A DNA stretch of 63,723 bases, counting the filler, from Lenisia limosa (Eukaryota; Protista; Breviatea): assembly GCA_001655205.1 (NCBI GenBank). It is 9 parts of 9 records of this genome, joined end to end, with 100 filler letters (N's around TTAATTAATTAA, not from the genome) between each part and the next. Parts side by side here need not be neighbours in the genome. Positions count along the whole stretch, not along the records: positions 3,757 to 19,263 come from LPNZ01010394.1; 8 more parts are not named here. One strand, given 5' to 3'. The translations under genes and the position numbers were made by a program. The notes under the pieces are model-generated. The model had not been told where the DNA came from. It was given only the letters and a program-made list of their open reading frames with translations, and searched no databases. Positions 3,713 through 19,263 of this stretch are shown one piece after another (within the stretch, counting starts at the first letter, position 1; each line of letters opens with the position of its first letter).

Positions 3713-3776
3713 NNNNNNNNNNNNNNNNNNNNNNNNNNNNNNNNNNNNNNNNNNNNCTTCTGTAGTTCTCCTTCTT

Positions 3777-6189
3777 ATGGCAGATATTCAGGAAACCACC
3801 CCATTGAACTCCATTGTAGCGCCAAAAAAGGTTTGGATCGCGTTTGTCCCTCTTAAGAGAGCCTATGATGGGATTTTTTTTAGTTTCTTATTATTTTCAT
3901 TTTATATATATAGATATATATATATATCATTATATAGATAGTATATATCTATATATATGCATATACTATATTGAAAATGCTCTATTGCACTTCAAAATTT
4001 CCATCACAAGAGTGAACTCGCATGATAAACTATAGGCGCGACTTGTGAGTATCGATGTTGCTCGAGGGATAACGATTGCTGTCATGTTACTTGTCAACAA
4101 CGCTAATGCTGCTTACCCTTGGCTGGACCATGCACCGTAGGTTTTGAGTACCTATTGGCTTGGTGTTGTTTTGTGGGTCTGTGTGTGCTCTCATGTTTGT
4201 TTTTTAGACTCCATTTGAAGTTTCTCTGATCTGCAGATGGGACGGTTGTAACCTTGCGGACTTTGTGATGCCATTTTTCCTGTTCATTGTGGGAGTGTCT
4301 ATATCGCTTTCTCTCGATAGGTTGGTTGTACTGGATTCTGTTTTATTTTTTGTTTCAGCACACGTATTCCAGGTAGAGTTAACCCCTCAAAATGGGCCAA
4401 AACAAAAAAGGTCCTTTGGAGAACATTCAAGGTAAGCTTTTCTCAATCTATTGGGGTTTCGCATAGATTACTCAACATGTTTCTCCAAACTCCTGCATAG
4501 TCTTTTCTGATGAAGAATCAGAACAAAGTTATTATGAACGTGCTAATTTTTTAATTAATTTTGTGTTACAATCGTAGATGCTTCTGATGGGATTGTTCCT
4601 TCAAGGTCATGGGTTCCCGGATTATGATCTGAACACTCTTAGAATCCCTGGTGTACTCCAAAGAATGTTTGTCATATCCCAACTCTTGTCATTACATTGT
4701 AGTGCAGTTTGTTACTGTGTTGGCGCTTTGGCTGTGGTTTTGTTACCACGTAGAAGAACTTGTAACCCGATCCCATACACTTCTGAAAATCCAAGTCTCG
4801 CCCAGGTTTGATGTGCCTTTGTTTTGATTCTTTTTATTAGGTGATCGGTCAGCGACTTTGGACAATGCTACTGGGTGTGTTTATCGCTATTATTTACCTG
4901 AGTGTATACTACTTTCTTTTCATTCCTGGATGCCAGTAGGTGATATGGATTGGCGACTATTGACTTGATGATACAGATACGACCGGTCAACCACAAACTG
5001 CAATGCTGCGGGCTACATTGATTACCACATACTTGGTACAAATCATATGTTCAGGTAATCACATGAGAACAGAAGATTGGTTTATAGGATAAATTCACTT
5101 CAAAATTTCAGATTGGAAGTCTAGAGTTACGGGATTCCCGTCAAGTCTAGAGTTCACAGGAATAGTTTTTTTTTTAAAAAAAAAAAAAGTACCAATATTT
5201 TCTTACTTAAGTCAGTACTTAAAAAATTCATGACATAAAAAATAAACTCAATGAAGTCAATGGGGAAGAGTGTGTAGGGTTGAGATACTTTGAATTTGAG
5301 AAGCCTGAAACATACTTCTCGACTTCCAATCTGAAACTTTTTAAGTGAAATTTCCCGTTGTTTCGACCCATAAGGGTCAAGCCCACGGGGCCATACAACT
5401 TATTTCATGATGTAGATGGCCTACATGCCTTGAATCCAACCCACCTTGTGAGCATTTTGATCCAGAAGGATTGGTGAGAAAAGGGCAATTAATTATTCAT
5501 TGTTTTCAGTTCAGTACCATCGGTGCATGTTTATCTGTATTTCTTGGAATGATTTGGGCAATGATTCACAAAAACATGTTCCACCAAACAAGGTGGGTTA
5601 TTCCAATGGTACTATTGGTGCTAATTATTGAGGAGGATGATGAGCTGGATCTTGGTATACTCGGCTTTATTAATCATTGGAATTGGCCTTCATTTTGGGG
5701 GGCTCTCTGCTCTCAATAAAAATCTCTATTCGCCAAGGTTTGCAGGAAGATGCTGATGAAGCCTTTATATGTTTAGCTACATTCTATTTATGGCAGGCGC
5801 AGCTGGCCTCTTCATGTCTTTTATGTGGGTCTACACATTTATTTCTTGCTTCTCACCGTTTAGCCACCATGTTGTTGATGTGATGGAGTGGAGGAAACCG
5901 TTCCACCTCTTCAAGTGTCTTGGAATGAACTCCATATTTATTTTCTTCATGGACCCTTTTACTGTTTTGTTTCTGAGGATTTTTTACTTCAAAGAGAAGA
6001 ATCGCAATCTCCTTACCCAGATCCAAGTCCATGTTTATCGAGACCATATGGAAAAGAAACTGGTTGGTGGAGACGAAAAATAATTGAGTAACCATTTAGG
6101 CTGACATCCTTTGGGCCCTCACTCATATCATTGTCTGGACGTTGGTGGCATATGTTTTGTATCGCAAGCGCAAGTTCTTTAAAATCTAA
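3777..6189 (+). CDS. HGSNAT: Heparan-alpha-glucosaminide N-acetyltransferase-like membrane acyltransferase
   Basis: MADIQETTPLNSIVAPKK|ARLVSIDVARGITIAVMLLVNNANAAYPWLDHAP|WDGCNLADFVMPFFLFIVGVSISLSL...GVLQR...LGMNSIFIF...VLYRKRKFFKI* (TAA 6187-6189). This has the family RLxSxDxxRG and H-A-x-W-x-G motifs. Confidence 0.9.
5087..5355. mobile_element. ~270 bp MITE-like element with ~35 bp imperfect terminal inverted repeats, in an HGSNAT intron
   Basis: Left GGATAAATTCACTTCAAAATTTCAGATTGGAAGTC versus reverse complement of right end GGAAATTTCACTTAAAAAGTTTCAGATTGGAAGTC. Non-coding AT-rich interior; no clear TSD. Confidence 0.65.
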
Positions 6190-6355
6190 AGGGGAGTAAC
6201 GTCAATATATATATATACAGTGTATATATACTATATTATATATAATATATCAAAGTACTATTTGTGTTTGGTTTTGTACATAACTACTTTTTATGATGGG
6301 TGAGTAGCAAAAAGTGCATATAGATTTAGATGCATGAATAAGGATGAACAAAAAC

Positions 6356-6868
6356 CTAAGGAAGTTGGCTGCGGAGATGGTTGAGGAGCTGAGTCTTAAT
6401 CCATGACTTAGTCATTGGACGGTATTGGCCAGTGTTACTATCAAAACTACAATATAAGCAAGATTTATCGGATTTGTCGAACTGGACAACGAAAAGAACA
6501 GAATATCATTAGGAACTAAGCAATTAACCTTAATATAATATGAAGAAGTCATTCCATTCTCTCCCCCTTACACAAGGCAGGCAATATCTTCCCAGTGATC
6601 GATAAAATCATAGAGGTGAGAAATATCATATGTGATTTCACGATAAGAAGGGTTTCTCCTCTTCAAATGGGCTTCATACCTGTGACAGAGACCTAAAATA
6701 AAGATAAAAGGAAGAGAGAGCGCCAAGCCATACCATCAAGAGCAAATTTTAAGCTTGTGAAGTCAGAATAGATTTTTGAGTCTTCATCTGGGGTTTGCTG
6801 AATCAAAATAATAGTGTGGGAGGACTAAAATGGTAAGGAAAGCACTAAAGGACAAAGAAACAAACCAT
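6356..6868 (-). CDS. ERH: Enhancer of rudimentary homolog
   Basis: M|[71 protein letters not shown]|[29 protein letters not shown]. Colinear with ERH (MSHTILLVQ...ITYDISQLFDFID...). Absent from the ORF track because it is split by introns. Confidence 0.95.
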
Positions 6869-6983
6869 TTTGATAAAAAGCGGTCTATACTACTTCTATT
6901 ATTTTTAACTCAGCTACAGAGACAAAGAGAGAGCGTTTTTTTTTTTGGAGAACTTTGAACTGTGAACTTTGAACTTTAATGCA

Positions 6984-7376
6984 TCAATAATCTGGGGGTG
7001 TATACAACCCAGGAAACCTCAACAAACCCCCCTTGGGGTTTATATATAAAACTACATACAAAAAAACAACAAGACGCTTCATTGCTATTCTCCTCCTCTT
7101 CATCTTTATACTCTCTCTTCTCCTGCCTTCTTTTCCATACTTCTTCATTCTTTTCTTCCTCCACTTTGCATACATCTTTCTTGCTTCCTTTCTTCTCTCC
7201 TTATCTTTAAACCATCCTTTAGTCCTTCTTCTTAGCTCTTCTTCTCCTCTCCACTTCACAATCTCGTCCATCCTTCTTCTTGCCATATCATAATCATTCA
7301 CTTCTCTTCCAATTCTCGTCAATATTCTCTCTTCCATCCATCTTCTTTCTTCTTCCATTTCCTTGCATTCTTCCAC
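6984..7376 (-). CDS. Charged, coiled-coil-like ORF/exon (E/R/K-rich); uncertain
   Basis: 130-codon open frame preceded by a polypyrimidine tract and AG near 7378. It could equally be a low-complexity purine tract. Confidence 0.3.
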   Translation of the reverse strand: MEECKEMEEERRWMEERILTRIGREVNDYDMARRRMDEIVKWRGEEELRRRTKGWFKDKERRKEARKMYAKWRKKRMKKYGKEGRRRESIKMKRRRIAMKRLVVFLYVVLYINPKGGLLRFPGLYTPPDY

Positions 7377-7667
7377 TATGTGAGAGAAGCAGAAAAAATA
7401 AAAAAAAACTGAAAGGGAAGAAGAATTGCTTAGACGTGGCGTGAAAACTTTCCGACTTGCCTAATTGGGTCTTTTCTTTTGCCAAAAGAAGCTTCACAAG
7501 CGAGCAGGATGGTCCAATTAAAAGATCCAAAAAAGTAACCATTATTGCGGTTGAAGTGCTATTGGTGTGCTGTTGAATATTTCACATTGGAGTTCTGTAC
7601 AACAGGTAAAAGGAATCCTCCATCCCAAAAGAGCCCTAGAGAGCCCTATCTCTAACCCCATGTCGTG

Positions 7668-10473
7668 ATGGAAGCACAAGGTTGCTACCATCAGAAAGAC
7701 CCCTCACCATTCACTATTTCCCCAAGTCCAATGCCCTATAATGTACATCACAGCCATCCAAAGGTGACAACTGACAGTACCAATTGGGAGGAGCATGATA
7801 TTGAGCAGATCATCTACGTCAGCAATGACAATGTAAGTTATATGCAAAATGGCTTTTTGACTTTGTTAGATATCTCCTGGTGGTCAAAGAGCACTAGAAT
7901 TTAAAAATGAAGCTATGTGGATGCAGGTGTGTTTAAACAACAGCATTTGAAATTACATTTGAGAATTGTCTTTCAACTTACTTTTATTCATTTAGCAACT
8001 TACGGAAGAAAATAGGGTTAGTTTGTGGTTCACTTCTACCATTTTAATGTCATCTTGATTACACATTTTTGAATTATCTTACCTTTCAAGAAACTCAAAG
8101 AGGAAAACTCAAAATTGAAGGTAATTGAACTCGGGAGTTCAGGAGTTTATCAGACACACTCTAACAAGTAGGATAAGATTGAACAGCTTAAGCGAGAAAA
8201 GTACATTCTTGAAATCGAAAATTTCAAAGCTCCCGAAAGACAAGTTGACAAGGTTGGATTTTTGACACAAGTTAGCTATTTCGCTGGATATTACACATCT
8301 GCAATTGTTCTTATATATAAGGAGGTTATATTGTTGTTCATTTGGATCTTATAATAAAGGAGAAGTCAGTAACGAATAAAGTCAAAAGAGCACATTCAAT
8401 GCAGGTTCAAGTAAGATAACTCTTGTCGAACTTACTGACCCATAGTCCACACAACGTGATATAGCGCCGCTCAAATTAAAATGCATTGAGGTAAGTTGCA
8501 CGGATTAGTTATAATTCAAATTACGTATGGCAGTTCAAAAAGCAAATTCACCCCTTCACTTTCACACATGCAGAGTACTCCTCCAGTATCCCCCGCTTCG
8601 TACAATTATGCCACAATCAAATGCAAAATTGGACTTTTGGTTGGTCACTGATTATTCAACTATTCAACAGTTATATCTTATTGAAAAAAATCAACCTGAT
8701 AATTGTTTGCGAAAATTTCAATTAGAAGTGGTGCTGATTAGTACACCCCAACAGTTCGAATTGGAACCTTGAAACAGCTCTTGACCATCGCCATTGCACA
8801 AACAGAACAAGACGTTGTAAAGTTCTTCATCAAGTAAGCATATTTCATTTTTAAATAAGATATAAAAGTTAGAGTTCATAGTTAATATTCAGTTCGTTTT
8901 CAACCCCTTTGGAGGTAATGAATGTGTTGCTTGAACTGTTTGAAGAAAACGCCAAGAGTATCAAAACTGACACTGAAAAGTCTATGAATGTAGGGTTTTA
9001 ATAAAGTTGACTTTAGGTACGAATTAACCTTGTTAAAGCGGCTAAAAACTGGGTTCACTATTGGGAGGATTTCTACAAAAATACAGATGTCTTGGTAACG
9101 CTGAATCTGATTTACTTTATAAGGACAGATTAGCATACTTCTTGTCGACACAAGATAACAACTATGAGGAACTTTGGCGCCCCACTACAGGCTTACTGAA
9201 ACGAAGGGCCAATGAATTGGTCAAACAGAATCACAATGCAGAACAGCGTCGAAGTAGAAGCATTATTGTTCCTAAAGTAAGTTCAAATTACTTGTCATCA
9301 GTTTCGTTTTTTTTTGCCACCTGGTAACTATCTATTCCGTACTCTTGAGACTATCACACCAAAAGAAGGAGTTCAACTGAGTATCCTGACGGTTAACCCC
9401 ACTGAACTAGCTCGGCAGTTGACATTGTTGGAGTCGAACCTTTTCCGAGCTATCTTTCTCCGTGAATTTGTGAACTTGTACGTGTGTATCATTATCTGCA
9501 TTTGTTTAGTATCACTGCATACTAGCTCACACTGTTAGCAATGGAGAAGAAAGTTACCGGCAAAACAGGAACGAACACGTTGCACCTAATCTTTGTACGT
9601 TCTTAAAACAGTAGGCAAAGGAGAATATATGTATATATGCATATATATATATGATATATAGTATATGATATATATTTTTATAATATGTAGCTATATTATA
9701 TCATAATATCATATACTATATATAATATATCATATCATATAATATAACAGTAATATATCGTATGTAATTATGTATCACACAACACAGCTCAACCTCCATG
9801 TCCAACTATGCGAAGGCTCAAGTCTTGAATGTTGGTTCAGATAAAAAGAAGCAAACCAAATTGATGAAGGCATTCTTAGTCCTAATTGAAGAATTGGAGA
9901 TCTTAAATAACTACAACGCGTAGGCTAACTTCGGCACTATCACTTTGATCAGCGTCATGGAGGTTTCCAGTGGACTCATAAGTACCGGTGTGGAGTTGCC
10001 AATTAAAAAAGGCAAAAAGTCTTGCAATATTGTATCAGAGTATATGGATTTGTGCCATTCTGAACATTATGAAAAACAAGTCGATTTTGAAAGACATCCT
10101 TTAGTTCTGTTTTTACGTAAGATAAAAATCATGTACACTAATACTGTAGCCCCTTACATCAAAAAAATAGCAGCCTTCAGAAATTACTATTCCGAAGATA
10201 ACACTTCTGATAACGAAATCAACTTTGAGAAGCACCATAAAATCGGGCTTGTTGTCAATAAGATCAGACACTGTCAACAGGTTGGAAGGACTGGGAACTA
10301 AATTGATGGAATTTAAAAATGATTATACTACTATATACTATATCATAATAAATTTGATGAAGTAGGATATGTACAGCTTGCAGGACATACCCAGTATTTC
10401 ACAGTGGCTCAGATCTCCTTTCAGTGCCACCCGATTCACATCAGAAATGATGCAAACTATGATTGAGCCTTGA
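7668..10473 (+). CDS. RasGEF (CDC25-like) domain protein with N-terminal coiled coil
   Basis: VNPTELARQLTLLESNLFRAIFLREFVN; MSNYAKAQVL...LIEELEILNNYNA; INFEKHHKIGLVVNKIRHCQQ|DMYSLQDIPSISQWL...MIEP* (TGA 10471-10473). Start codon uncertain. Confidence 0.8.
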
Positions 10474-10618
10474 GCTCAAAAATGTTGTTTTTTTGACAAT
10501 ATGATATGTAAAATGTATAGTATTTTGCAACAGATCCATATGGAGAGCAAAAAAAAAGTATTATATAATGTAGTAGTAATATATCAGATAGTTTTATAAA
10601 AAATTAAATATAAACTGC

Positions 10619-13600
10619 TTATTTGACAGTTGAAAAGGCGGACTTGTAAGCATCAACAGCAGGCTGGTCGAACAACACAAAATAGACATCCTGGGTGTGA
10701 AACTGGGAAAAGGGTAATACTAAATAGAAGAGGCTCTTTTAAAAAAACCACTCACTTTAAGAGAAGTGGCCATTGAAGCATAGAAGAACTCTTCAATTCC
10801 CTTCACGATCGCCTTCGCTGCTGGCTCCAGTGGGAATCTAGATTGTGACATGGAACGAGTGAAGGGAAAAACAAGGAATCTTACCCATTCATTCCGGTTC
10901 CAATAGCTGGGAAGGCAATTGAGCTCAGGTCATCATTTTCAGCAACAGCAAGGGCATTCTGAGAGTAAAAAAATACGCAGATATAGGCTCTCAACCTCCT
11001 ACACACCTTGACAGTTGTAGTGAGGTTGCCAAGGCTGTCAGTGTTTTGTCTATACTGGGGGCTGTGTACGTGGATTATCTTTTTACAAGGCAGAGAGTGT
11101 CCTAAATAAATAATTATCCAGTTTCATAATTCAAAATGTATTGTTGAAAGGACAACTCGTTAAGAAAAGGGGTTTTTAATCCTACCAGCAGTTGAAATAG
11201 CCCTTGTTTCATCCAAGCCATTGGGGTTGTTTTTGTTCCACTCATCAGTGTCTGATCTCAAATCGCTTCCAACAGCACTACTTAATGCCTGGCCTAACCC
11301 ATAAGTACCTAGTAATACGGCTAGTTGAACCTACCGACACGGCCTCCAAGATAGAGTCCCTTGTTGGTTGGGTGGATGATGGCATCAACATCAAGAGTAG
11401 TAATGTCTCTGTTGGGTTAGAAGAATGGTCATGTTTTGCTTCCATCATTCATATTCCTCTTACTGCTTGACAATGTGAAGATTCTGACCCAAAAATAACT
11501 TCTTTGTAGCGACTTTCTCGATCTGAATGTGATCAACCCTGATTGAAGTGCAAAGTCATATTGAGTGTAATCCTACATCCGGTGCCTGTCCGCCATTGCC
11601 TCCGTCATCACTTTTGTTAAGGGAAGCAATCTAAAATATCAAACGAGGGGGCCTTGAAAAGGCTACCTTCCTGATACCAGTCGGCTTTGCAATGATCTTG
11701 ATGTTCTTTGCAATCGGACGCACAGCTGGCTTGGCCTTGGTTTTTGTTTGGGAAGCCTTTGCAATGACCTTTGTCTTTGGGGAAGGCTGCCTGATGGAAG
11801 TAGGGTTCGGCACAACACCTCCTTCACAGATAACTGTGGATCCCAAGAGCTACGTCGGGTTATTAATGACTCAGGACTACATACTTCATTAAATTCAATA
11901 TCTTTGCGGAAGGCAAGAAGGAGCTCGCGAGGCCTGATCCTCTTTCTTTTTGCTTCATGAGCCGCATTTCCTGCCTGCAATGTCAACATGTACATATATT
12001 ATATCATAATATATTTACAGTAAAAAAAACTGCGAAGGATACAACCTTGTTTTATTTCTCATCTCTCAAATATATCATATTATGTATGATATATGTATCA
12101 GATGCTCCTGCGCCAAAACCCCGTCATTTTTGGGATTTACCGTCACTTTTAAATAAATGGCGTCATAGACCTCAAAAATCCAATGTTTCACTATTCTAAC
12201 CAGCAGAGAGTAAAAATTAACCAAGTTTTTTAAAATAAAATAAATCAAAAAAATTCTTCTGAGGTTTCGGAAGTTCAGTTAACCCCCTTTTCATGAAGTT
12301 TTTTTATTTTTACTTCCCGCTTTTTAAGCTTACCAAAGTTGATTTTTTTATTACATTTTTTTACAAAATCAAGAAGAAGACATCCAAATCAGTTGTTTGC
12401 CACCTTTTTTGTGAATAACAAAATGACATCTAGGTCCTTGGGTTTTTGTTACAAAGTTGGCATATTTGGTCCTGAAACATGATTAGTAAAAGTTTGAGTA
12501 ATATAGGCAGGCCTATTTGGGAAATGAACGGGGGTCTGAATTTGTTTGTTTTCAAATGTATTTCGTCTATTTATATGTTCTGAATAACAATAGACTCAGA
12601 GTTTCCAATTCAACGATCTCATTTTTACAGGTTTGAGAGTAATTTAGCCGAAAAAGCGTTATATTGAAGTTTGGGTGTATTTATATGGACATGGGGCAAT
12701 AATGGTCCTTTCTCCACTCTATTTGGCATAAGAGACTTTTAATTCATGTTTTACAACTTTTTTCAACCAAATTATTCAATGGGTTGTTCTTATAATTTCG
12801 CCGAAAAAGAGAAAATGTTATATTTCTGAAGAATGTTGACCCATATCCACTAGTGATATGATCAGATGACCAACTTACGAGTCGAAATGATAACGGAGAT
12901 ATCACAAAGGTTCATCCCGAGTGTATCAGAGTATCATTGGGACTTGTCGGTCAATTATCACACAAGTGGATATGAGGTATCATACCACTGCGTAGAAAAT
13001 GTTAGTGCACACATATGAAAATGACCCAAAAGATAGTTTCCAACAATATGTAAAATCACTATAATCGATATATCATACGATATGTATAATATATATCACA
13101 CCGTCCAGAAATATGTCAAATTTTAGATATAATATGTGAAATTTGGCCAGTTTTTCGTCACTTTGAAACAATTGGGGGAAAAAAGAAAGTGATAGTGTGA
13201 GTTCTGCATCTGAGAGTCCAAGTGAACGTACTTGCCCCCCCCCCCATTGGTATGTTTCACTTATCGTTCAAATAATTTAGCTATAAGAAGAAGAATGGAG
13301 TGGCAGTACGTAAAAGTGATTTCGTACGTAGTTTTTGATTTTGAAGGATAATACTAGGGCCGCTTGCAGTTGTCCAGTGTAACGAACAAAATCAAAAAGA
13401 CTTCATTCAAAATGTTCGGTCAAACAGATTTGGTCCATATTAGTCCTCATAACATAAAATAAAGAGTGGAATGCGGCATCTAAAAAAAGTCAAAACCCCC
13501 CAACCAAATCGAGCAACTCTCCAACTAAGTATTCCAAGGCGGCTGCCATTGCAATCCCAGCTTTCTGGTGGGTCAGTCAATTTTATCTAGTGCAGCTTAG

Positions 13601-13909
13601 AAGAAACTCCGAGACGTACCTTTCCGACACGAGATTTGATGTTCAGACTCTTCAGCTTCTTTTGGAATCTGTAGGTTAGAAGATATGTTTTAGGTTCGAG
13701 AACATCAGAAGAAAAGAAGAAAACGGGGAGAAAGTACAACATGAATGGATCTGATCTTTTGATGGTGAGATCCTCATAATCTCTGCCACAGCTGTGTCAC
13801 GGGGCTTATGGAGAGCAAGACTCAGCCCAGACCTGTGTGGAGGAAACGTTAAGCCAGCTGCTTGTGCGGTCGTTTGCCTGGCTTTCTTCGGGCTGCGTGA
13901 TCCAACCAT
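10619..13909 (-). CDS. macroH2A: macroH2A histone variant (H2A fold + basic linker + macrodomain), macroH2A1.1-like
   Basis: Spliced: MVGSRSPKKARQTTAQAAGLTFPPHR|FQKKLKSLNIKSRVGK|KAGIAMAAALEYLVGELLDL|AGNAAHEAKRKRIRPRELLLAFRKDIEFNE|LLGSTVICEGGVVPN-[K/P/A-rich linker]-IEKVATKKLFLGQNLHIVKQ|DITTLDVDAIIHPTNKGLYLGGRV|GQAL...|GHSLPCKKIIHVHSP...TTVK|NALAVAENDDLSSIAFPAIGTGMNG|FPLEPAAKAIVKGIEEFFYASMATSLK|DVYFVLFDQPAVDAYKSAFSTVK*. All junctions are GT-AG and in phase. Confidence 0.93.
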
Positions 13910-14302
13910 TTTATTTGGTAGGGAAATGAGACAGAGAAGAGAGAAACAGAGAAAAGAAAACAGAAAGTGGCAAAGAGGGGGCGGCCCGGGGGTTGGTAGT
14001 TGACTCGCTCCCGATCAGAAATCGGTTCGGAAAGGGATGGATATGTTTTTACTACTAATATCCACAGTTCAAGAGTTTGACAAGAGTATCTATAACGCTG
14101 ATAACACGTATTATATAATTATATAAAGCTATAATAAAGCTATAAAGAGTGGGAGAGTCGAACGAAAGTCCTTTTTTGGGACCTGCTGAAACTAGGAGAA
14201 AAGATTTTGTGCAACATTGTAAAAACCCAATAATGTAATTCATACAAAACCCTTAGATTCACAAAAACACCGAAACACCCTAGAATACACCTTTACTCCG
14301 CC

Positions 14303-17300
14303 CTAGATCTCAAAGAAGAACGAAGGATGCTCAATGATCAACTGCAGGGCTGATGACTGCACGGACATGTCCATCATACTATATCATTAGATTACTCTGT
14401 GCTCACAGCATTCAAAGAATACAATAAAGAGACTTACCTGTCAAACGTTTCCTCTGCAGCTCTCACGCATGTTGGTCCGAAAACTAGCGCCAAATTTGAC
14501 GACCCCATCCTGAGAGGGTTAGCCTTACCTACACATCCAATCAAGATCCATCCTCACTTATTGACGCTCTCATATTTGCTGATCTCATTGAGGTAGAAGA
14601 AAAGCATTTTCGCAGTCTCAAAGTTGTTCTACATAGATAAGACGACAGCACAATGTACAAACGGACCTCAGGAAGTAGCTTGATAACTGACAGAAGGTTG
14701 TTGTATCTCTCGTCGCTAGTCTGTGCCGTTTCTGGAGGGGGGAGGGGTGAGCTGTCCCATCAATCAACTCAAAAAAAAANNNNNNNNNNNNNNNNNNNNN
14801 NNNNNNNNNNNNNNNNNNNNNNNNNNNNNNNNNNNNNNNNNNNNNNNNNNNNNNNNNNNNNNNNNNNNNNNNNNNNNNNNNNNNNNNNNNNNNNNNNNNN
14901 NNNNNNNNNNNNNNNNNNNNNNNNNNNNNNNNNNNNNNNNNNNNNNNNNNNNNNNNNNNNNNNNNNNNNNNNNNNNNNCACGTGTTGTGTCAAAGGCCTT
15001 CTTGAGATTGTTAATGGAGCTGACATTACCAGATAAACGGAACAATCCCTCAACGTTTTCAGCACCTGCAGTGTATAAGTAAGATGAAGCAGCAGTGTGC
15101 TCATCAATGGGAGAGCAAATTCAATACAACTGTCCCCATACCTTGCTCTCTCAGGAGACGAATAGTTTCTTCCAGGAGCCTGCGAAAGTGAAATATCAGT
15201 CAAACAGCATTTGAAAGCCACACACGTTGGCCAAGGGGGTACCAGGCATACCGGGGTACTCGAGGGTTGGAACCTGGGTGTGTGCGGATAGCAGCCTGAA
15301 TGGTGTTGCCGAAGATTTTGGTGGGCTCTAGACAACATAAGTTTGAACCTGAGGAAATGGTCGAAAATCGACATACCCCCCACGTTTGATTCCAACAGTC
15401 AAGAGTTGGGAAGCATTGAGGAGGGTTCCCTTCTTCATTTTGGTGGTCTGCAGGGAGGGGTAAGGTAAGAAGAATTAATATCCGATTATATCGAGCCTGA
15501 TTCCTACAAGGGGCTTCTTTGTTGCGGCAGTGAGAGACTTCACCCAAATGACAAGCTCAGCCTGCCGAGTAAGAAAAAACAACACTATATTTCCGGCTGG
15601 AACGCACCTGGGACATGACGGAGAGCAGGTGCGGCTTGCCTCCCTTCTCTTGAACTCGGAAGACAAATGGCCGTCTGGCCCAGATTAGGGGTAGTGGTTT
15701 TAATACAAAAACATGTACTAGCAAAATTTTAACCAAAATAGAACGATTATAAATTAAAAGTAAACATGGGAGACCCACCCACCCGGTGCTTGTAGAGGAT
15801 GCAACGTCAATCTTGCCTCCTGACAGGTAATAGCTGAACCTTGCTTTTGATCCCTGGATATGATGAGATGAGTGTTATGACATTTGAAATTTTGTATCAC
15901 GAAATCTTTTATTTTAGATCTGATAGTAGTTGAGCTCCACAATATGGCGGATGCCATAGTGACGCTTGAGCCTACCTTGGCGTGGAAGTCCTTGAAGCCG
16001 CTGAGGATACCATCGGCTAGAATGCAGTACCGTGTTGTCCAGTCCTGTACGGTCAGGGTTAGAAACACATTTTTCAAATACATACTTTGCTGCCGGAGTC
16101 ACACATCATGAAGCCTCTGTGAACATCTCTTACATCAGGGTCAGTCTAAAATGAGTCAGTGACCACAGACATAAAATGNNNNNNNNNNNNNNNNNNNNNN
16201 NNNNNNNNNNNNNNNNNNNNNNNNNNNNNNNNNNNNNNNNNNNNNNNNNNNNNNNNNNNNNNNNNNNNNNNNNNNNNNNNNNNNNNNNNNNNNNNNNNNN
16301 NNNNNNNNNNNNNNNNNNNNNNNNNNNNNNNNNNNNNNNNNNNNNNNNNNNNNNAAGAAAGTTTGTCTCTTACGAGTTGTTGCTGTGGAACAACTGGCTC
16401 AGCAGCTTGAGGCTGGGGCTGGGGTTGAGGAGTCTATAATGGTTAAACCCAGAGCACAATGGAAGACTGAGCAGTCGGAGAACGCAAAGCAATGTCAAAC
16501 CTGTTCGGGCTGAGTGGTGGCGACAGCGGTGGAGGCGGCACCAGCAGCAGCGGCACCAGCAGCTGCACCACGGCCTCTTCCACGCCCACGGCCTGGGGGG
16601 GGGGGNNNNNNNNNNNNNNNNNNNNNNNNNNNNNNNNNNNNNNNNNNNNNNNNNNNNNNNNNNNNNNNNNNNNNNNNNNNNNNNNNNNNNNNNNNNNNNN
16701 NNNNNNNNNNNNNNNNNNNNNNNNNNNNNNNNNNNNNNNNNNNNNNNNNNNNNNNNNNNNNNNNNNNNNNNNNNNNNNNNNNNNNNNNNNNNNNNNNNNN
16801 NNNNNNNNNNNNNNNNNNNNNNNNNNNNNNNNNNNNNNNNTTAGAATAATGGCATCTACCCTCCAAATATACAACCTATGAGCAATACCAAGAAGAGTGT
16901 CAGATAATTCATGTGAGTGGAAAGGGAGTACCAGATAAAAGAAACGGATATTCGGGAAGGAAATCGGAAAAGGCTCTTGGAATAAGCAGCCAACCTCGTC
17001 CTCTGCCTCGGCCCCTTCCGCGACCGCGAGGGCCAGCGGGTCCGGCTGCTGGCTGGGAGTCAGGCAGGGTATCAGCCTGAACCAGTTCGGGCTTAGACTC
17101 AACAAGGCTGGGCTGTGACTCCGCCTTAGTCATCTCACANNNNNNNNNNNNNNNNNNNNNNNNNNNNNNNNNNNNNNNNNNNNNNNNNNNNNNNNNNNNN
17201 NNNNNNNNNNNNNNNNNNNNNNNNNNNNNNNNNNNNNNNNNNNNNNNNNNNNNNNNNNNNNNNNNNNGAGCGGCCTCTTCGGCAACAACAGCCTCAGTTT

Positions 17301-18629
17301 CACCCTGGTACGCTTCTTCAACTTGGGGAGCCTCGTTTTCCTCAACCATGCCGGCTTCTTCTTGTGCCTGCTCTACCTCAGGCTCTTCCTCTTGTTGCTC
17401 AGGCTCTAGTTCATCTTGCTGAGGTTCTTGTTCAGCTTCAGCTAAGGGCTCTTCTCCGTCATCTTCCACGCTACTCTGTCCGAGGGCTTCAAGCTCTGCA
17501 AGTGCATCATCTCTCTCATCGTTTTCAAGCGAAATCGGTTTTGTTTCCTGTGTCGTCAGGTTGATATTGAAAGTTGTACAAACATGGAGATTCTGTATGT
17601 TCCATCATGGCAGCATCAGCACCAACCTCAATTTCATAATGCTGGTCGGAGGCCGCAACAGGGTCAGAGTGGAATTCAGCATCAACTGGACTACTCTCCG
17701 CTTCTGGAAGGNNNNNNNNNNNNNNNNNNNNNNNNNNNNNNNNNNNNNNNNNNNNNNNNNNNNNNNNNNNNNNNNNNNNNNNNNNNNNNNNNNNNNNNNN
17801 NNNNNNNNNNNNNNNNNNNNNNNNNNNNNNNNNNNNNNNNNNNNNNNCCAACCTCCATCCCCTTCAAGACTCGACATAGAAGCTGAATGTTCCTTGAATG
17901 GTGACACATTTGTGATAAAAAAAAAGAGTCTATTATCTATCTGGAATATATATCCTTTTAAACCAAGCTCCCATTGGTACAAATGAGAAGGCGGAGGTTT
18001 GTGTTTGAAAATCATCTACACAACAGCAAGCTTGTCCAAATGTTCTTCAAACACAACCACCTCCAGCAATTAAAGGTCAAAACACATAGTGAAATTAAGT
18101 GCCAGGCTCAATCATAATCATATAAAAACTGGAGAAATATCGGAACATTATTCAGTTGATAATCAAAACCCACATCAGAGATTCCTTGAAGGCCTTCTTC
18201 CATTTCTTCCGCGGTCAAAGTGGCAACAATCTAAAATTGGTCAGAGGAAATGGGCGTTAGAGTGGATGAACGCCTTCTAGCCTTCCTTTAAACTAGTTTT
18301 TCAGCTTACATCTTCAACGACAACATCTAAAGAAAGTTAGAAGAGTCCAAAAAAGATAAAAAAAAAAAAAAAGGGANNNNNNNNNNNNNNNNNNNNNNNN
18401 NNNNNNNNNNNNNNNNNNNNNNNNNATCGTCCTTTTCTCCTTTCCACCATCCAGAGTCAAGAGCATCGCCTGAGGCCGGTTAAAGACTATTTCTCGGAGC
18501 ATCAAGAAATCATTTGAACGAACCGATTGCAGTGAACGTTTCTCCAGTCTCAAAAGCAAGCTGGTTTGGTTGAGAGGTCTCGTAACTAAAAGTTGAACGA
18601 ACTCTAGTTCGCTTGTCTTCAGAACCCAT
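14303..18629 (-). CDS. SH3 - acidic/Pro-Gly-Arg linker - PH - RhoGAP protein
   Basis: SH3: YETSQPNQLAFETGETF...DSGWWKGEKD. PH: DWTTRYCILADGILSGFK...ELVIWVKSL. RhoGAP: KIFGNTI, EGLFRLSGNVSSINNLKKAFD, MGSSNLALVFGPT, LQLIIEHPSFFFEI*. Several N gaps interrupt the linker. Confidence 0.85.
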
Positions 18630-18932
18630 CTTCAACAAACAAACTAACTATACTCGTTGCTATTAAGAATAGTTTACTTGATCGTTCTCAGTGTGTTCTT
18701 GTCCTTGCGATTACCTTGCGATGCTGATATTGGCAAAATTGGGAGAAATCAACCGGGGATCAGTGATCAGGTTCTCCTTTCAGCCATTGCCATTTACGCC
18801 TTTTATTTCAAAAAAACAACAACAAAAAAACAAGTAAAATTTGAATGAAAACCCTGCGAAAATCCCACTTTCACTAAAAATACATAAACCATAAGAAAGA
18901 AGTAGAAACAGCTCTGAAATCTTGCAAATAGT

Positions 18933-19263
18933 CTATTTGTGGGAATGTTGCGACAGCTTGTTGGACATGACAAATGAACGGAAGGAAAGGGAACGGGTTT
19001 TGTCGATAACCTGGGTGTGGTTAGAATAAGGGTCAGAGTTAGCAGTAACCGAAGCCTACTTGTTGGTATACTGAATCTTGGGGGGTTGTCATGACAACAC
19101 AGTTCTTGCTGGCATCAATCTTGCCATCCAAGCGTGCGTTGCTGCAGATTAGAGAAGCCCATAAATCAAGCACTGTACATCAAAAACCCAACAATATCCT
19201 ACCGAATAAGGTTGACGATCCATCTCTCGGCATCTTCCTCCTCCATCTCAAGCTTTTCAGCCA
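18933..19263 (-). CDS. eIF3e: Translation initiation factor 3 subunit E, 3' end
   Basis: AEKLEMEEEDAERWIVNLIR|NARLDGKIDASKNCVVM...YQQ|VIDKTRSLSFRSFVMSNKLSQHSHK* matches the eIF3e C-terminus. Truncated by the scaffold end. Confidence 0.92.

Follow-up and report, generated by a model that had tools for sequence, protein, structure and literature searches.

MacroH2A is a histone variant through which chromatin is connected with NAD+/ADP-ribose metabolism; how old it is bears on the origin of eukaryotic chromatin regulation. The variant has been described as ancestral in animals, including cnidarians and placozoans, and as lost in Drosophila and Caenorhabditis (PMC3380720). Oikopleura dioica also lacks it (PMC3156773). 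A survey of 172 eukaryotes reported macroH2A in holozoans and Meteora and placed it among five histone variants inferred for the last common ancestor of eukaryotes (LECA) (bioRxiv 10.1101/2021.11.30.470311). The closest described systems are vertebrate macroH2A1.1 (splice form 1 of human MACROH2A1; PDB 1zr3 and 3iid) and the macroH2A of Capsaspora owczarzaki (7ny6 and 7ny7). Here we analyzed a window of 63,723 nucleotides (nt), this being the whole stretch of nine joined parts from assembly GCA_001655205.1, of which positions 3,757 to 19,263 come from LPNZ01010394.1. On the minus strand of this 15.5-kb piece we describe a locus that represents, with a probability of about 0.85, an intact gene with many introns and a polyadenylated transcript, encoding a histone variant of the macroH2A type with 358 amino acids (aa). 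As in vertebrate macroH2A1.1, the order of the encoded parts is H2A fold, basic linker and macrodomain.

Six-frame translation and manual joining of the minus strand resulted in 13 exons in one frame, starting with an ATG at 13909 and ending with a TAA at 10619-10621 (Table 1). The interval given by the original prediction, 10619-13909, corresponds exactly to the stop and the start of this coding sequence (CDS). The gene had been described as invisible in the open reading frame (ORF) track and, in fact, the ORF list holds only fragments of it. Transcript evidence was obtained from contigs of a polyA RNA run, labelled metatranscriptomic, which were placed on positions 10300-14200, and a DNA run from the same 2016 study was used alongside. 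The locus occurs in no public runs other than these two. A single RNA contig of 1117 nt with a depth of 49 spans 10592-13922 without any mismatch. It contains 12 joints, each reading CT..AC on the plus strand and thus GT..AG on the minus strand, so that all 12 introns of the gene are GT..AG introns. Almost no RNA depth was recorded within the introns (12003-13443) or in the flank on either side (10431-10561, 13968-14200), demonstrating that the contig represents spliced mRNA and not contaminating DNA.

Ten of the 12 RNA joints were identical to those of the exon model built from sequence only, and two acceptors were reset by the RNA. Intron 8 extends from 11334 to 11294 (41 nt instead of 26 nt) and intron 12 from 10755 to 10691 (65 nt instead of 53 nt). 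The RNA-supported CDS of 1077 nt is free of internal stops and codes for 358 aa. Its H2A fold (residues ~1-112), basic linker (~113-172) and macrodomain (~173-358, split over seven exons) are encoded by one mRNA as one polypeptide. Hence, the predicted joining of the three parts in one frame by canonical splicing was borne out by the 12 GT..AG joints, and the RNA check of the transcript placed H2A and macro exons on one polyA contig. The motifs quoted in the prediction (KKLFLGQNL, VKQDI, AIIHPTN..YLGGRVG, SIAFPAIGTGMNGFP and VYFVLFD) were all recovered within the 358-aa protein. Introns 1 to 12 measure 164, 55, 1530, 35, 36, 54, 55, 41, 84, 48, 47 and 65 nt; their median length is 54.5 nt and the shortest has 35 nt. 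The CDS has a GC content of 47%, and most introns lie between 38 and 45%.

An assembled contig is not a single read, and one that extends over two genes is no proof of a single transcript. The RNA contig might therefore be an assembly chimera, or a read-through product, joining an adjacent H2A gene and a macro gene. This explanation is extremely improbable. Across 12 exact GT..AG joints, the frame stays open from ATG to TAA. Neither a start codon context nor a stop or a gap separates the H2A part from the macro part, and exons 5 and 6, with the linker, join their neighbours in frame at both ends. A single macroH2A-type transcript is thus the preferred reading. Its splice donors include the weak GTTGGG of intron 3 at 13505/13504 and the GTCTGG following exon 1. 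The RNA contig supports both, and the splice-site consensus seems to be loose here at positions +3 to +6. The RNA contig carried no non-genomic extra letters and no sign of a spliced leader (SL), and the Rfam scan of the piece revealed neither an SL RNA nor a small nuclear RNA.

All homology evidence was obtained exon by exon using Pfam and the PDB, which yields single-exon scores below the whole-protein cut-offs for histone families. Exon 4 matched Pfam Histone (E 0.0033) and exon 5 matched Histone_H2A_C (E 0.013). Against the PDB, exon 4 retrieved H2A chains at E 1e-4 with the conserved pattern AGNAA(H/R)...R.(R/I)PR.L.LA.R.D.E.N, and exon 5 retrieved the C-terminal docking segment of H2A with LLG..(V/T)I..GGV.PN. 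The two exons match the alpha3/alphaC and docking segments of canonical H2A, H2A.Z and H2A.W, with which they share the strings AGNAA..R..PR.L.LA.R.D.E.N and LLG...I..GGV.PN. In contrast to the protein described here, canonical H2A, H2A.Z and H2A.W have no C-terminal extension of ~245 aa comprising a linker and a macrodomain.

The extension begins with ~60 residues that are rich in Lys (18%), Ala (13%), Ile (13%) and Pro (10%) and have an isoelectric point of 10.6, in agreement with the predicted Lys/Pro/Ala-rich linker. This basic linker is probably disordered. Its sequence is unrelated to that of the vertebrate macroH2A1.1 linker, whereas its composition is alike. A search with the linker-bearing exon 5 (61 aa) against 1.84 billion representative proteins displayed only a spurious 740-aa low-complexity match, and the lack of a true relative fits a fast-evolving linker. 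Furthermore, the Rfam scan of the 15.5-kb piece gave no match to the histone 3' stem-loop. Together with the 12 introns and the occurrence of the mRNA in a polyA library, this is what replication-independent histone variants typically display.

The macrodomain exons provide more specific matches. Pfam Macro (PF01661) was found with exon 10 (E 0.008) and with exon 11 (E 1.1e-4; 22.5 bits compared to a cut-off of 22). The open frame covering exons 10 and 11 has Capsaspora macroH2A 7ny6 as its best PDB match (34.9 bits, E 1.7e-7; GHNLPSKWIVHVHSPNY in Capsaspora and GHSLPCKKIIHVHSPQY here), followed by human macroH2A1 with ~28, PARP14 with 25, MacroD-type domains with 18 and macroH2A2 with 13 bits. 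For exon 8, human macroH2A1.1 (1zr3/3iid) scored best (23.5 bits, E 1.8e-4), the vertebrate switch-region exon being identical to DITTLDVDAIIHPTNKGLYLGGRV at 15 of 24 positions, while MACROD1 and MACROD2 reached ~12.5 bits. Exon 12 matched exclusively vertebrate macroH2A1 macrodomains (160-186 of 1zr3). The sole match of exon 13 was Capsaspora 7ny6, in which EVYFVLFDQ corresponds to DVYFVLFDQ of the present gene. These matches are colinear, covering 45-68, 104-159 and 160-186 of 1zr3 and then 189-205 of 7ny6. In summary, macroH2A macrodomains are the first or the sole PDB match for five exons (8, 10, 11, 12 and 13). MacroD-type and PARP9/14 macrodomains, which belong to the same fold family and lack a histone fold, match more weakly; they rank lower in every exon in which they are present (18-25 vs 35 bits for exons 10-11, 12-13 vs 23.5 bits for exon 8).

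Four further searches were performed with the exon 10-11 region. In the ESM Atlas, its 80-aa open frame fell into generic "Macro domain" clusters only. A search for homologous proteins with this frame, subject to a length filter that removes full-length relatives, yielded no candidate. An exact 30-nt pattern across the exon 10/11 junction was without a match in JGI metagenome contigs, and a degenerate-pattern scan with the 80-aa piece revealed no relative.

Because of the tripartite architecture and the colinear, specific macroH2A matches of the macrodomain, the locus is, as judged from its sequence, assigned to macroH2A and not to a MacroD/PARP macrodomain that happens to lie beside a histone. 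The original prediction had likewise compared the macrodomain with macroH2A1.1, and macroH2A chains do lead the PDB matches, ahead of MacroD and PARP domains. The same architecture could have arisen convergently, if an H2A gene had independently acquired an unrelated macrodomain; the gene would then not be a macroH2A orthologue. The strong divergence of the H2A part is compatible with such an origin, as is the lack of a macroH2A chain among the listed matches for exon 4 or the matches for exon 5. However, each of five macrodomain exons ranks macroH2A first or as the sole match, above PARP14 and MacroD, the family-typical strings VYFVLFD and SIAFP.IG.G.NGFP are present, and the order H2A, basic linker, macro is retained. 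A convergent fusion is therefore very unlikely, and we continue with the assignment to macroH2A.

Several observations weigh against this assignment or limit its precision. The homology appears exon-wise, with a modest E-value for each exon. The histone fold is unusually divergent: FPPHR stands where FPVGR is usual, and exon 4 is only ~55% identical to canonical H2A (16 of 29 residues). Exon 1 had no match in the PDB, no meaningful PDB match was obtained with exons 7 and 9, and no macroH2A chain appeared for exon 4 among the PDB matches listed. Moreover, the RNA evidence consists of one assembled contig from one study. Finally, ADP-ribose binding and nucleosome incorporation are both predicted properties.

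Four elements of the macrodomain, which we take to hold ADP-ribose in the human macroH2A1.1 structures and to be altered in the non-binding forms 1.2 and macroH2A2, were compared in alignments with the human and Capsaspora chains. The Asp at the start of exon 8 is kept in the HMMER alignment (D-I here and in human), and so is the Gly-Gly pair (YLGGRV vs YIGGEV in human). The glycine loop G-x-G-x-N-G is present as AIGTGMNG, compared to SIGSGRNG in human, within the longer segments SIAFPSIGSGRNG of vertebrate macroH2A1.1 and SIAFPAIGTGMNG of the gene described here. The Phe-Asp motif VYFVLFD is identical here, in human and in Capsaspora. All four elements named in the original prediction are thus retained, and the pocket is predicted to be of the binding (1.1) type. 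In line with this, macroH2A1.1 chains were present for exon 8, and neither a 1.2 (1zr5) nor a macroH2A2 (2xd7) chain occurred among the PDB matches listed. Ancestrally, macroH2A would be expected to have a pocket resembling that of the 1.1 form.

Two features might indicate that the macrodomain is a structural module no longer binding ADP-ribose, comparable to vertebrate macroH2A1.2 and macroH2A2: exon 9 is divergent and has no PDB match, and the Gly-Gly pair, followed by Glu in human macroH2A1.1, is followed by Arg here (GGRV vs GGEV). A loss of binding is nevertheless quite unlikely, since Asp, Gly-Gly, glycine loop and Phe-Asp are all kept and exon 8 matches 1.1 chains, with no 1.2 or macroH2A2 chain among the matches listed. 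Family membership and motifs together argue for a pocket that would bind ADP-ribose.

Exon 8 corresponds to the region in which vertebrates switch between the 1.1 and 1.2 forms. Its 3' boundary may coincide with the end of the vertebrate alternative exon. It is flanked by short introns, intron 7 with just 55 nt and intron 8 with 41 nt, and a tblastn search with the 358-aa protein against the whole piece revealed no second copy of any exon. Because there is no mutually exclusive exon, the binding-type form is expected to be the sole product of the gene. Unlike vertebrate macroH2A1.1, it has no alternative 1.2-type exon, and its histone fold is much more divergent. MacroD hydrolases carry a catalytic GGGVD motif. 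At this position the present protein reads GGRVG, and macroH2A likewise departs from the hydrolase motif; binding without hydrolysis is therefore predicted.

On the basis of its family, the H2A module would replace canonical H2A in a subset of nucleosomes, and the basic linker may contact linker DNA. The macrodomain would project from the nucleosome and bind free ADP-ribose, or poly(ADP-ribose) at its chain ends, without hydrolysis. Chromatin might thereby become responsive to PARP activity and to nuclear NAD+ consumption, as in vertebrate macroH2A1.1 and Capsaspora macroH2A.

The novelty ascribed to the gene in the original prediction was overstated. MacroH2A had already been found in diverse animal phyla (PMC3380720), in holozoans and Meteora, and was inferred for LECA (bioRxiv 10.1101/2021.11.30.470311). 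The gene is real, but it is possible, if doubtful, that it is not new for its lineage and belongs to a protist group in which macroH2A has been reported, such as unicellular holozoans (a filasterean or ichthyosporean) or breviates. Capsaspora macroH2A is the best PDB match of three exons, holozoans carry macroH2A (bioRxiv 10.1101/2021.11.30.470311) and intron-dense unicellular holozoans exist (PMC5560861). A polyA metatranscriptomic RNA library would also be in keeping with a protist cultured together with bacteria or prey organisms. On the other hand, the organism is not Capsaspora itself, as the aligned exons are only ~43-70% identical. Exon 8 is closer to human (IGGE) than to Capsaspora (FAGQ), with LGGR in the present gene. 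This and the low identity indicate that the sequence does not come from Capsaspora or a close relative. The ichthyosporean and Corallochytrium data of PMC5560861 are divided between two BioProjects, which does not fit the single study behind the DNA and RNA runs used here and speaks against Abeoforma, Pirum and their relatives; for Lenisia, only sparse transcriptome data have been described. The macrodomain as a whole lies at about the same distance from the human protein as from that of Capsaspora.

That the organism stands outside Metazoa, Holozoa, Breviatea and Meteora, the lineages already known to carry macroH2A, is rather unlikely. If it did, the locus would extend macroH2A, complete, expressed and with a pocket of the binding type, to one more deep lineage. 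The value of the finding hinges entirely on the lineage of the assembly. No conceptual change follows from it, because the presence of the variant in animals, holozoans and Meteora, and its inferred presence in LECA, have been published. A well-supported, expressed, single-isoform 1.1-type macroH2A represents one more data point. Furthermore, the contrast between a very divergent histone fold and the conserved pocket beside it helps to address where in the protein constraint acts.

Gene architecture was compared with that of other eukaryotes. With ~11 introns per kb of CDS and an intron GC content of ~40%, the macroH2A gene can be set beside the ~7-9 introns per kb of CDS calculated for animal and ichthyophonid ancestors and for Ichthyophonus (PMC5560861). 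Monocercomonoides exilis has 0.8 introns per kb of CDS, an intron GC content of 25%, a genome of 75 Mb and an overall GC content of 36.8%; the 15.5-kb piece is gene-dense with ~37% GC, and the contigs of the DNA run total 71 Mb. The median intron length is 27 bp in Dicyema, compared to the minimum of 35 nt found here. In the orthonectid Intoshia linei it is 57 bp (PMC6543705), compared to the median of 54.5 nt in the macroH2A gene. The fast evolution described for animal parasites with miniaturised genomes (PMC6736024) would fit the very divergent H2A fold. By these measures, Monocercomonoides exilis and Dicyema are unlikely hosts and Intoshia linei fits in intron length only, while Oikopleura dioica is excluded by its lack of macroH2A. 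The compact, intron-dense architecture agrees as well with a small-genome protist as with a miniaturised animal. An animal host with such a genome, for instance a reduced parasite, is a fair possibility, though less likely than not; the gene would then be an ordinary metazoan macroH2A, and the predicted unicellular, possibly unreported lineage would fall. The wide occurrence of macroH2A in animals (PMC3380720) speaks for this reading, and the similar distance of the macrodomain to human and Capsaspora speaks against it. The marker genes eIF3e, DPH2 and NAPRT, by which the original prediction proposed to place the organism, are absent from the 15.5-kb piece.

Table 1. Features of the macroH2A gene and its 5' side (positions of the window).
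Feature	Position	Strand	Evidence or remark
5' UTR (untranslated region; to contig end)	13910..13922	-	RNA contig end at 13922
Exon 1: start codon, H2A N-terminal tail to AGLTFPPH	13833..13909	-	sequence model and RNA
Exon 2: H2A alpha1 / loop L1 RFQKKLKSLNIKSRVGK	13620..13668	-	RNA joints 13668/13833 and 13564/13620
Exon 3: H2A alpha2 KAGIAMAAALEYLVGELLDL	13505..13564	-	sequence model and RNA
Intron 3: 1530 nt, GTTGGG..CAG, high-copy repeats	11975..13504	-	RNA joint 11973/13504, depth table
Exon 4: H2A alpha2 end to alphaC AGNAAHEAKRKRIRPRELLLAFRKDIEFNE	11885..11974	-	Pfam Histone, PDB H2A chains
Exon 5: H2A docking segment LLGSTVICEGGVVPN (to ~11790), then linker start	11667..11849	-	Pfam Histone_H2A_C, PDB, composition
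Exon 6: linker end IASLNKSDDGGNGGQAPD	11577..11630	-	sequence model and RNA
Exon 7: macrodomain start IEKVATKKLFLGQNLHIVKQ	11464..11522	-	sequence model and RNA; human-chain motif KSLFLGQK
Exon 8: DITTLDVDAIIHPTNKGLYLGGRV, Asp and Gly-Gly of the pocket; vertebrate 1.1/1.2 switch region	11335..11408	-	PDB macroH2A1.1
Exon 9: variable macrodomain segment	11186..11293	-	RNA-set acceptor, joint 11292/11334
Exon 10: macrodomain core GHSLPCKKIIHVHSPQY...	11007..11101	-	Pfam Macro; PDB 7ny6
Exon 11: glycine-rich phosphate-binding loop NALAVAENDDLSSIAFPAIGTGMNG	10885..10958	-	Pfam Macro; PDB macroH2A chains
Exon 12: FPLEPAAKAIVKGIEEFFYASMATSLK	10756..10837	-	PDB vertebrate macroH2A1, 160-186 of 1zr3
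Exon 13: DVYFVLFDQPAVDAYKSAFSTVK and TAA (10619-10621)	10619..10690	-	RNA-set acceptor, joint 10689/10755; PDB 7ny6
3' UTR (to contig end)	10592..10618	-	RNA contig
Six N runs, 49-235 nt	14780-14978, 16179-16354, 16606-16840, 17140-17267, 17712-17847, 18377-18425		5' side of the macroH2A gene

Intron 3 stands apart from the other introns, which range from 35 to 164 nt, and owes its length to probable repeat insertions. Word depth in the DNA run amounted to 1320 at 12003-12133, 2793 at 12789-12919 and 7141 at 12920-13050, compared to ~37 in the flanks, which corresponds to repeats of up to ~190 times single-copy depth. These repeats are probably a nest of insertions of transposable elements or miniature inverted-repeat transposable elements (MITEs). 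Many contigs end loosely in 12003-13181, and a faint RNA contig stops at 12909.

The N runs on the 5' side of the gene resemble gaps left in the scaffolds of a draft assembly built from short reads. Open frames between them (14000-19263) were without a Pfam match. This region contains an acidic Glu/Gln/Pro-rich frame on the minus strand (17268-17469) and Arg-Gly repeats at ~16900-17100, both likewise without a Pfam match. The sole Rfam match in the piece, mir-1282 at 7331-7424 on the minus strand, scored 29 bits compared to a gathering score of 107 and is almost certainly due to chance; it lies within a low-complexity frame rich in Glu, Lys and Arg (6987-7460).

Pfam was also compared with twenty other open frames of the piece, among which only RasGEF fragments and fragments resembling heparan-alpha-glucosaminide N-acetyltransferase (HGSNAT; DUF5009) were recognized. 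Exact look-ups of three ORFs in a gene-position index gave no match. With these two genes as neighbours of the macroH2A gene, nothing animal-specific was found in the 15.5-kb piece. The RasGEF gene lies on the plus strand, tail to tail with the 3' end of the macroH2A gene, with exons at 9281-10298 and possibly from ~7600. Pfam RasGEF was detected on two of its exon fragments (E 9e-4 and 2e-3). Its catalytic domain looks divergent, and a low-depth RNA contig covers 10300-10430. Further along, beyond the RasGEF gene, a multi-exon gene for an HGSNAT-like (DUF5009) membrane protein occupies ~4208-6080 on the plus strand. Its exon encoding RWDGCNLADFVMPFFLFIVGVSISLS is identical to residues 299-328 of human HGSNAT at 15 of 30 positions (E 0.02).

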